A DNA stretch of 63,792 nt, filler included, from Octopus bimaculoides (Eukaryota), in NCBI RefSeq assembly GCF_001194135.2. It is 8 parts of 7 records of this genome, joined end to end, with 100 filler letters (N's around TTAATTAATTAA, not from the genome) between each part and the next. Parts side by side here need not be neighbours in the genome. Positions count along the whole stretch, not along the records: positions 47,319 to 58,622 come from NC_068981.1; 7 more parts are not named here. One strand, written 5' to 3'. This document shows positions 52,727-54,069 of this stretch, in pieces. The number at the start of each line of letters is the position of its first letter. Position 1 is the stretch's first letter. Made by a program: the position numbers and the translations under genes. Under the pieces are notes generated by a model, which saw only the letters and a list, made by a program, of their open reading frames with translations, was not told the DNA's origin and did no database searches.

Positions 52727-53323
52727 GGGTCTTTCTGATTTGGCGGACACCATTTCTTTTCTAACGAAACACTTTCAGACTTAGGGCACTGGTAGAATTT
52801 GTTATCTAAAACATATTTTACTCTTAGCATTGTTGAGACAAATTTTATATTTTTAAAGTTATTTCGTGTTAAAATTGTCGTATTTCGGTAATTTCAACCA
52901 ATCACTGACGTCTATTGAGGTGAAAGCAATTACTGCTGTGGATTGTCAACAACACGTTGTGGCGGTGTAATGGGATCTTCTCCCATGAATAAAATTAGTG
53001 CCGTTGTTTGTCAACAACAACTATCGGCGGTACTGTTATTTATGACATCGTTCGTGCGTTTGTACTGGTCTTATCTTTAGGGTTTTAGGGTTAGTGTTCG
53101 GGTTTAGAGTTAGGGTTTTACGGTTAGGGTTAGGGTTAATGTTATGAGTATGTTTGCCAAATTTCATGAAAAAATTGTGGCGGTGTATTGAACAGATTTT
53201 CACTAAATTTGGCAAAAATACTCATAACCCTAACCCTAACCCTAACCCTAACCCGAACTCTAAAAAATGGTGTCCTTCAAATCAGAAAGATCCCCTAACC
53301 CTATATATATAACATAGAATAGA

Positions 53324-53384
<61 letters not shown>

Positions 53385-53385
53385 C

Positions 53386-53438
<53 letters not shown>

Positions 53439-54069
53439 TAATCGCATTTGAATATAAATGAGTAACCGCATTTCAAAAATAATGTGCAGTTATGTTGCGA
53501 ACTTTTCAAGTCTTTACACGGAAATGCACCAAAAAACATAGTCGTTGTTTTCATATCACAGAAAGCTTTAAAAGTTTGGGCTTGAAAATCATTCCCATTG
53601 ACTGACGGAAGAATAAAAGTTTGGATTGAACCCTTTATTAAAAAAAATACTCATAGACTGTCACATACATACATTCACACGAACATATATAAATGTATAT
53701 TGGTATGATGTGTGTGCGTGTATATACATATAGGATTAATGGCTTACTAGCATATGTTTTGACCAAATGTTGACCCCGGCCATGTCTTACTTAATAAAAC
53801 CACCTGATAGAATCTCTGAAGTCATTTTAAAATTAAACTGGTGTATCATGTCCCATGTTTTCACCTCAATAGACGTCAGTGATTGGTTGAAATTACCGAA
53901 ATACGACAACTTTTAACATGAAATAACTTCGAATATAAAAATTTTTCTCTGTTCTATGTGACAATATATACGAGTATACGAAGTCTTAAAGTGTTTCGAT
54001 AGAAAACACACTAAATAAAAACTAAATAAAAACTAAATAAAAAATGCTGTTCGCCAAATCAGAAAGATC
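52727..54069. mobile_element. Composite TIR element (family E) with 8-9-bp TSD and captured host fragment
   Basis: TIR-like ends at 52727-52753, 53267-53294 and 54046-54069; (A)TACAAGCA duplicated at 52718-52726 and 54070-54078; single-copy empty site at 54806-54814. Confidence 0.85.

Follow-up and report, generated by a model that had tools for sequence, protein, structure and literature searches.

Animal Pack-TIRs, in which element sequence surrounds a short host segment that has a parental copy, have been surveyed by Tan et al. (2021, Nat Commun 12:4280; PMC8277862). In that survey the parent is no more than 15 kb away in 57% of cases, and mostly closer than 5 kb, and the median microhomology is 2 bp. 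Most of these duplications are considered independent of transposition, and cis-biased gap filling was proposed for most of the single-copy cases. The elements involved are mostly hAT and Tc/Mariner, no Pack-MULE was found in the reference genomes, and Octopus is absent from the main text of the survey (PMC8277862). Other systems that bear on the locus described below are plant Pack-MULEs, MITEs, and the reversed-ends Ac/fAc composites of maize.

The stretch of DNA analysed here, called the window, comprises 63,792 nucleotides, filler included, from Octopus bimaculoides (California two-spot octopus), and coordinates refer to it unless another locus is named. Within a tandem array of IL-17-like genes it contains an insert of 1,343 bp (52727-54069). 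With a probability of about 0.9, we interpret this insert as a non-autonomous DNA transposon with TIRs that belongs to an unclassified Octopus family, has a 9-bp target-site duplication (TSD) and encloses a 421-bp duplicate of IL-17 intron 1. We are equally confident that it represents a transposon-associated duplication of non-coding host DNA of the Pack-TIR type.

An insertion within an IL-17-like gene array

The relevant part of the window (47319-58622) is 100% identical to positions 9164-20467 of a longer locus, L001, and corresponds to ~25.585-25.596 Mb of chromosome CM046601.1 in GCA_001194135.2. The ORF at its right end encodes an IL-17 domain protein (Pfam PF06083 IL17, E = 2.6e-14), although an exact look-up of this ORF with a TTG start gave no record. 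It corresponds to exon 2 of the right-arm IL-17-like gene (58010-58537, plus strand), which matches without a difference both the exon-2 portion of UniProt A0A0L8HUC3 and the C-terminal portion of RefSeq XP_052830621.1. The coding part of exon 1 (MKTST, ATG..ACA; 55701-55715, plus strand) is followed by the donor gtaagt, and intron 1 (55716-58009) ends with the acceptor ...gatag/GTT at 58009/58010. Close IL-17-like relatives occur in tandem on one strand in the adjoining loci (L002 and L001), in agreement with the 31-36 IL-17-like genes in tandem arrays published for O. bimaculoides (PMC8353272). More distant IL-17 paralogs are spread along ~0.55 Mb.

Some annotations of these genes deserve comment. 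The RefSeq model XP_052830621.1 (270 aa; L001 10001-20382) looks chimeric. It splices the frame of a LINE reverse-transcriptase fragment (49090-49380, with the donor gtgagt at 49381) to the IL-17 exon 2, and its "intron" of 8.6 kb contains both arms described below as well as the insert. The older model A0A0L8HUC3, whose exon 1 is the MKTST segment, agrees with the paralogs. O. sinensis carries two tandem copies of the upstream region with homology to the O. bimaculoides unit (L008 6748-7423 and 7419-8164), and, to judge by this homology, the gene annotated at L008 10001-11313 may, with its start at 10001, miss an upstream exon 1 near 8.1-8.2 kb. The inverted repeats I3-I6 that a repeat finder reports at 57238-57602 are an artefact of an N run (57257-57583) and the (TA)n that flanks it.

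The region to the left of the insert is a degenerate, partial, pseudogene-like IL-17 unit. Positions 51731-52726 pair inverted with 55787-54806 (82.7% with gaps; p ~0.09-0.18 by window), and the homology extends, more diverged, through the intron-like part to ~50111 (p ~0.33-0.44). In the exon-1 homologue of this left unit (51814-51828, minus strand) the splice donor is changed from GT to TT (51813-51812). A LINE fragment with a reverse-transcriptase match occupies the position expected for exon 2, and no exon 2 is found in the assembled part of the unit, nor any IL-17 similarity at that position. The 6.8-kb contig with the insert and the left arm (47319-54139) ends at an assembly gap on either side, the right-hand one at 54140-54277, so that the "mirror", or inverted, orientation of the left arm depends on scaffolding. 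However, the insert and the source of its intron segment share this single gap-free contig, and doubts about scaffolding therefore leave their relation untouched.

The insert is flanked by a perfect 9-bp duplication, ATACAAGCA, at 52718-52726 and 54070-54078 (both plus strand). The tenth bases differ on both sides, which sets 9 bp as the maximum length of the duplication. Elsewhere in this part of the window the 9-mer occurs only once, as its reverse complement TGCTTGTAT in the right arm (54806-54814, minus strand), and this represents an empty paralogous target site: 52600-52726 joined to 54079-54139 aligns colinearly with the reverse complement of 54745-54945, with 170/188 identity. The repeat at both ends and the single mirror copy that a preliminary description of this DNA had reported are thus reproduced, and the empty site proves to be colinear. 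A second empty site, more diverged, lies at ~9150 of L002, upstream of the neighbouring gene XP_014769330.1. Together, the TSD and the empty paralogous sites are strong evidence for a transposase-type insertion that occurred later than the duplication of these IL-17 units. The exon-1 homologue of the left unit lies ~0.9 kb downstream of the insertion site. For window ORFs that span the insert junctions, exact look-ups gave no record.

Two further features of the array were observed in the same region. A SINE-like repeat of ~220 bp, with the first letters GGTGGCGAGCTGGCAGAATC, lies in the left arm at 51498-51722, and we take it to resemble the abundant tRNA-derived Octopus SINE. It occupies the same position in a downstream partial unit (L001 26250-26450), whereas the corresponding right-arm stretch is partly covered by an assembly gap. 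More copies are found at L003 10578-10716 and 21067-21209, and at L009 7340-7737 and 13614-13836, in O. bimaculoides and O. vulgaris loci. The downstream partial IL-17 unit itself, located beyond the window's gene (L001 25178-25677 and 26237-26710), matches the left contig from 52691 down to 51313. Between its final ~360 bp before a gap (L001 25300-25677) and 52237-52600 the identity is 100%, which points to either recent conversion or a repeat node in the assembly, and its intron part is 10-19% diverged. On one side its homology ends ~25-35 bp from the insert's target site. On the other it extends 8 nt past the boundary into the captured piece, where AATCGCAT is common to both and is followed by ACAGAGTGGAG; the latter resembles a hAT-type terminus, and no second end is present within L001. 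An explanation in terms of a haplotype variant of this downstream unit was rejected, given that the flanks differ and that the intron part has this divergence.

Anatomy of the insert and its intron segment

The insert has four parts: a 569-bp unit (unit A), ~30 GATA units, the 421-bp intron copy, and a 212-bp inverted second end (end B). Unit A (52727-53295, plus strand) is a MITE-like, non-autonomous element with TIRs of its own, 52727-52758 pairing with 53262-53293 (32 nt, 88%), and includes two 46-nt direct repeats. A second pairing joins 52730-52763 to 54034-54067 (34 nt, 85%). The TIR pattern is found three times in 30 kb, where zero occurrences are expected. A telomere-like (TTAGGG)n / (CCCTAA)n foldback at 53077-53303, detected by repeat finding, is arranged around an 86-nt palindrome (DNA folding energy -59.5 kcal/mol, z = -11.2). 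The CCCTAA arm of this foldback is interrupted by the 3' TIR of unit A; the interrupting TIR-like segment measures 38 nt, and CCCTAACCCTA resumes directly after it. The central palindrome motif has a relative at L007 8202-8238 (37 nt, 86%), and the foldback core may be derived from another repeat family. The coding capacity of the whole insert is limited to short spurious ORFs.

The (GATA)n microsatellite that follows (53314-53438, plus strand; 30.8 copies by TRF) includes GAAA and GACA variants. Such arrays are unusually frequent here: five (GATA)n/(TATC)n tracts occur in 30 kb (50576-50699 and 53314-53438; L001 2806-2872, 3068-3123 and 26455-26514), of which the two longest, with ~30 units each, are those of the insert and of the left-arm intron. 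End B (53858-54069, minus strand) carries a TIR at 54034-54069 and three tandem copies of an 11-bp repeat at 54010-54043. It is an inverted copy of ~200 bp at the start of unit A, that is, of its 5' terminal and subterminal region (52727-52928, plus strand). Within this copy, the 58 nt that adjoin the captured piece (53856-53913) are 97% identical to 52871-52928, with 0 mismatches in 55 columns aligned by MAFFT, whereas the remainder is 75-85% identical and has indels of 34 nt and 22 nt. End B is in this respect a mosaic. The 58-nt block is better conserved than the TIRs, and its CCAAT and TGACGTC motifs (CAACCAATCACTGACGTCT) give it a promoter-like appearance.

The complete TIR unit of ~570 bp, the (GATA)n tract and the second TIR-bearing end listed in the preliminary description were all recovered. 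Only the composite is flanked by a TSD, and unit A alone is not. We rejected a separate nested insertion of unit A, because ATACAAGCA does not recur in the 9 bp that follow its 3' end, and the insertion of a second element beside unit A, because such an element has no separate TSD. Copying of the unit A end by fold-back through the terminus was rejected as well, since the right flank is a direct duplication of the left flank and not its reverse complement.

The composite TSD of 9 bp could be 8 bp only through a chance match between the last base of the element and the flank. The two termini have the sequences GGGTCTTTC... and GATCTTTC... (GGGTC.../GATC...). TSDs of Merlin elements are 8-9 bp, and hAT elements have short TIRs starting with YARNG. 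Mutator elements have TSDs of 8-11 bp, mostly 9 (PMC6446971), and Mutator, Merlin and hAT have all been annotated in O. vulgaris (PMC13282606). The 9-bp TSD therefore fits Mutator or Merlin. The ends of the insert do not look like those of hAT elements, as the termini lack the usual hAT end motif; a TSD of 8 bp, the hAT length, would require the chance match just mentioned. The preliminary description had allowed either Mutator or hAT, which gives hAT too much credit; Merlin is to be added to the candidates.

Searches for relatives of the element gave little. In nine IL-17-paralog loci of O. bimaculoides, O. sinensis and O. vulgaris (~169 kb non-N, a sample far too small for copy number), no other copy of the TIR or the element was detected when up to 6-7 mismatches in 30 nt were allowed. 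Exact patterns for the TIR and for a conserved 26-mer had 0 matches in metagenome and viral contigs, collections that are probably devoid of Octopus DNA. Stop-free translations of the element, the captured piece and the foldback core had no protein match at E <= 10 in a collection evidently without such spurious Octopus ORFs. The supplement of the O. vulgaris repeat paper contains no matching sequence, and Rfam and ARAGORN reported only sub-threshold hairpin or low-complexity matches.

The captured segment (53437-53857, plus strand) is an inverted copy of 50945-51323 (minus strand), within the intron-homologous part of the left degenerate unit, with 90% identity over 342 nt in BLAST. Over 365 aligned sites, p is 0.099 and the K2P distance is 0.106. 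In comparison, its K2P distances to the copies in the right arm (56066-56440, plus strand; identified by repeat finding and alignment), in two upstream units and in O. sinensis (L008 8340-8790) are 0.37-0.43. A neighbour-joining tree rooted with O. sinensis makes the captured piece and the left-arm copy sisters in 500/500 bootstraps, and the two have lineage-specific indels in common. The left-arm copy is thus the nearest relative and represents the probable source lineage, at a distance of 2.1-2.9 kb. The designation as IL-17 intron is justified by exon 1 at 55701-55715 and exon 2 from 58010, between which 56066-56440 is intronic. Similarity to IL-17 proteins is not found in the insert; what was captured is intron 1 only, with no exon or coding sequence.

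The direction of transfer is from intron to transposon, because the captured piece is sister to the adjacent copy and is nested among paralogous introns, in a segment conserved as far as O. sinensis. The reverse proposal, that the 421 bp are ordinary internal sequence of an interspersed repeat of which IL-17 introns hold old copies, is hardly credible. All copies found are at the homologous position in closely related IL-17 units, including that of O. sinensis, and the insert copy falls inside the paralog tree together with the indels of its lineage. No copy is present in four loci of more distant O. bimaculoides paralogs, nor in the O. vulgaris locus. A common interspersed repeat, which the preliminary description had named among the results that would refute it, therefore fails wherever it can be tested.

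The captured piece retains a 54-nt segment that is missing from the left-arm copy but present in the right arm and in the neighbouring P0041 unit. Either the left-arm deletion occurred after capture, or the source was a sister paralog. The preliminary description had identified a ~420-bp inverted intron copy closest to the left arm, with a retained segment of ~55 bp, and had proposed that capture predates the deletion or drew on a third paralog; our alignments agree with each of these points, and the tree places the piece beside the left-arm copy. The P0041 unit of O. bimaculoides is at a distance of 0.155 from the P0002 unit of O. sinensis, which indicates that the captured segment is old IL-17 intron sequence. 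If this pair is orthologous, the capture (0.106) would postdate the divergence of O. bimaculoides and O. sinensis.

How the composite may have formed

At the right junction the captured piece ends with ...CCCATG(T) and end B begins with TTTCACC, 212 nt from the terminus, with an overlap of 0-1 nt. At the left junction the GATA array ends with ...GATAGATAT and the piece begins with AATCGC, where at most "TA" is common to the source (TCTAG/AATC). The junctions are therefore inside the element and not at its ends, with 0-3 nt of microhomology, and since neither of them is an element terminus, both were made by repair-type joining.

The mechanism that we favour, at slightly short of even odds, is template-switch repair in cis, or gap filling. 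The element would already have been in place before capture, and a break or a stalled fork would have arisen beside the telomere-repeat foldback and the microsatellite. Repair synthesis would then have switched templates among nearby same-side sequences, copying the intron segment, and probably also the 58-nt block of the element's own left arm (52871-52928), in inverted orientation before rejoining the old right arm. In favour of such repair are the location of the nearest relative, 2.1 kb away in the same gap-free contig, the low microhomology at junctions internal to the element, a foldback and a microsatellite that look fragile and adjoin the break region, the mosaic structure of the right arm, and the inverted orientation of both copied segments, whose templates lie to the same side. 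It also corresponds to the pattern described by Tan et al. for animal Pack-TIRs (PMC8277862). A point against it is that the 58-nt block is 97-100% similar to its template and the intron piece 90% to the left-arm copy, which suggests two events or a closer, unassembled paralog as the source. The three element ends, those of the complete unit A and the truncated inverted end, look like the remains of two elements, which also argues against gap filling of a single element. This objection lapses if the family has TIRs of considerable length (at least 120-200 bp). A further counterargument is that array and piece are permuted relative to the left arm, an order predicted directly by two-ended transposition with re-replication.

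Transposition involving two elements is a close rival of gap filling, although we hold it only tentatively. In such an "alternative-end" event, unit A and a fractured element represented by end B would both have resided in an IL-17 intron of the left lineage or a sister of it, and their outer or reversed ends would have been used together. Insertion at ATACAAGCA would have carried or re-replicated the host DNA beside each element, resulting in a macrotransposon or a composite of the Ac/fAc style. The layout is that of maize composites, in which a TSD, a complete element, flank, a junction, host flank, a truncated element and a TSD follow one another (PMC4270019), and the third, internal TIR needs no extra assumption. 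The left arm has the order piece, 255 bp, (GATA)31, whereas in the insert a GATA array of ~30 units precedes the piece, a permutation expected from outward re-replication from two reversed ends; both arrays, of ~30 units, end with GATA-TA and have internal GACA variants. Such arrays are nonetheless common locally, and the ~24 nt between the 3' end of unit A and the array are not homologous to the flank of the left-arm array. The mosaic identity of end B (97% versus 75-85%) would also be unexpected of an independent family copy. Moreover, the donor must have had a fractured element abutting the intron piece, and no locus with paired elements was found at 50700-50955 of the left arm or in the other units examined. 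This left-arm interval is colinear with the right arm and shows neither element nor footprint, so that a lost or unsampled donor is needed. A more specific version, in which a Mutator- or Merlin-like MITE pair made a natural composite insertion by two-ended transposition and the IL-17 intron flank was re-replicated, is in our view unlikely.

A classical Pack element would have captured the intron elsewhere, for example from a third IL-17 paralog, and the finished composite, maybe multicopy, would then have transposed to this site. We judge this improbable, even though the perfect 9-bp TSD encloses the whole composite and the piece keeps the 54-nt segment that the left-arm copy is missing. The 10% by which the piece differs from the left arm is also the distance that separates this arm from the downstream partial unit, in which this segment is missing. 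Nevertheless, with its nearest relative 2.1 kb away, such an element must have landed beside its own source lineage. No second copy exists in the very small sample of ~169 kb of Octopus DNA, and multicopy Pack-TIRs of animals are rare and far from their parents (PMC8277862). The preliminary description had spoken of Pack-type capture. A TIR-bounded, TSD-flanked insert enclosing a host intron duplicate is indeed what we find, whereas transposition after capture is not supported, given a source 2.1-2.9 kb away in the same contig and junctions that are not element termini. An origin by repair in place is at least as likely as post-capture transposition of the composite.

Still less probable is an assembly artefact, a chimeric short-read contig with a false join, for example, at the 125-bp GATA array or at element ends that are repeated. 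Assembly gaps are numerous, and the nearest to the right TSD is 70 bp away; the GATA array may equal the read length (an assumed value), and the exact identity between L001 25300-25677 and 52237-52600 shows repeat-related ambiguity in the region. But the two sides of the array are anchored independently, the left by the left flank, the TSD and unit A, and the right by the piece, end B, the TSD and a flank that is colinear with the paralogous arm. With both halves anchored, the target site is consistent whatever lies in the microsatellite. The captured copy also differs by at least 10% from every other copy, which indicates a distinct locus.

Significance and comparison with known systems

This locus represents a clean case of a DNA transposon duplicating cephalopod host sequence, in which a TSD, an empty paralogous site, and both source and copy in one contig are available. 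It resides in a large lineage-specific Octopus expansion (31-36 IL-17-like genes, PMC8353272), where transposon-associated repair or transposition adds to array turnover beside tandem duplication, LINE/SINE insertion and gene conversion. In practice little follows from this, as no exon was moved and the host unit is pseudogene-like. An earlier suggestion that such events are reshaping this cytokine locus is consequently overstated: nothing coding was captured, and the host unit is partial, with its GT>TT donor and no exon 2 in its assembled part. The insert and its source form an inverted repeat of 342 nt and 90% identity, 2.1 kb apart, inside the 8.6-kb intron of XP_052830621.1, so that a transcript running through both copies could form dsRNA related to IL-17 introns, although this is speculative.

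The interest of the insert is modest unless the two-ended transposition reading is true. In that event no animal genome would have shown such a footprint before, and the insert would also be the first Pack-type element reported in a cephalopod; we found no earlier report of a Pack-TIR in the cephalopod clade or in the IL-17 family. To our knowledge, two-ended transposition with re-replication has been demonstrated only for Ac/Ds in maize, and we know of no natural composite insertion of the Ac/fAc kind documented in an animal.

Several features of the octopus insert nevertheless recall the reversed-ends Ac/fAc composites of maize (Zhang et al. 2014, eLife 3:e03724; PMC4270019). It comprises a complete and a fractured element, adjoining host DNA, an internal join and an overall TSD, and the layout of TSD, element, flank and junction is the same. 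Its flanks are in permuted order, as in the maize composites, whose internal junction homology is 0-9 bp. However, the octopus insert is 1.3 kb in length and the maize composites 10-23 kb, and its donor pair was not found among the units examined. The maize composites are also hAT events with an 8-bp TSD (PMC4270019), in contrast to the 9-bp TSD observed here.

With plant Pack-MULEs the insert shares a 9-bp TSD, a GGG-type terminus, long subterminal inverted homology and host DNA inside, but its capture is of intron only, not of gene exons, and it shows no sign of amplification. Unit A resembles MITEs in being short (569 bp), non-coding and AT-rich, with TIRs and a foldback; MITEs have moderate to high copy number, and the sample of ~169 kb, which is far too small to decide on this, gave no other copy of unit A.

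The closest correspondence is with animal Pack-TIRs. Two TIR-bearing segments (52727-53295 and 53858-54069) flank a non-element segment (53437-53857) that has a parental copy in the host, with transfer from host to element. As in those elements, the parent is intronic, in cis and less than 5 kb away, microhomology at the junctions is little, and the duplicate is apparently single-copy. Unlike the surveyed Pack-TIRs, the octopus element is unclassified with a 9-bp TSD, and it has three ends and a mosaic right arm. Animal Pack-TIR duplicates with intronic, nearby parents have already been described, and the octopus insert is of the same kind.
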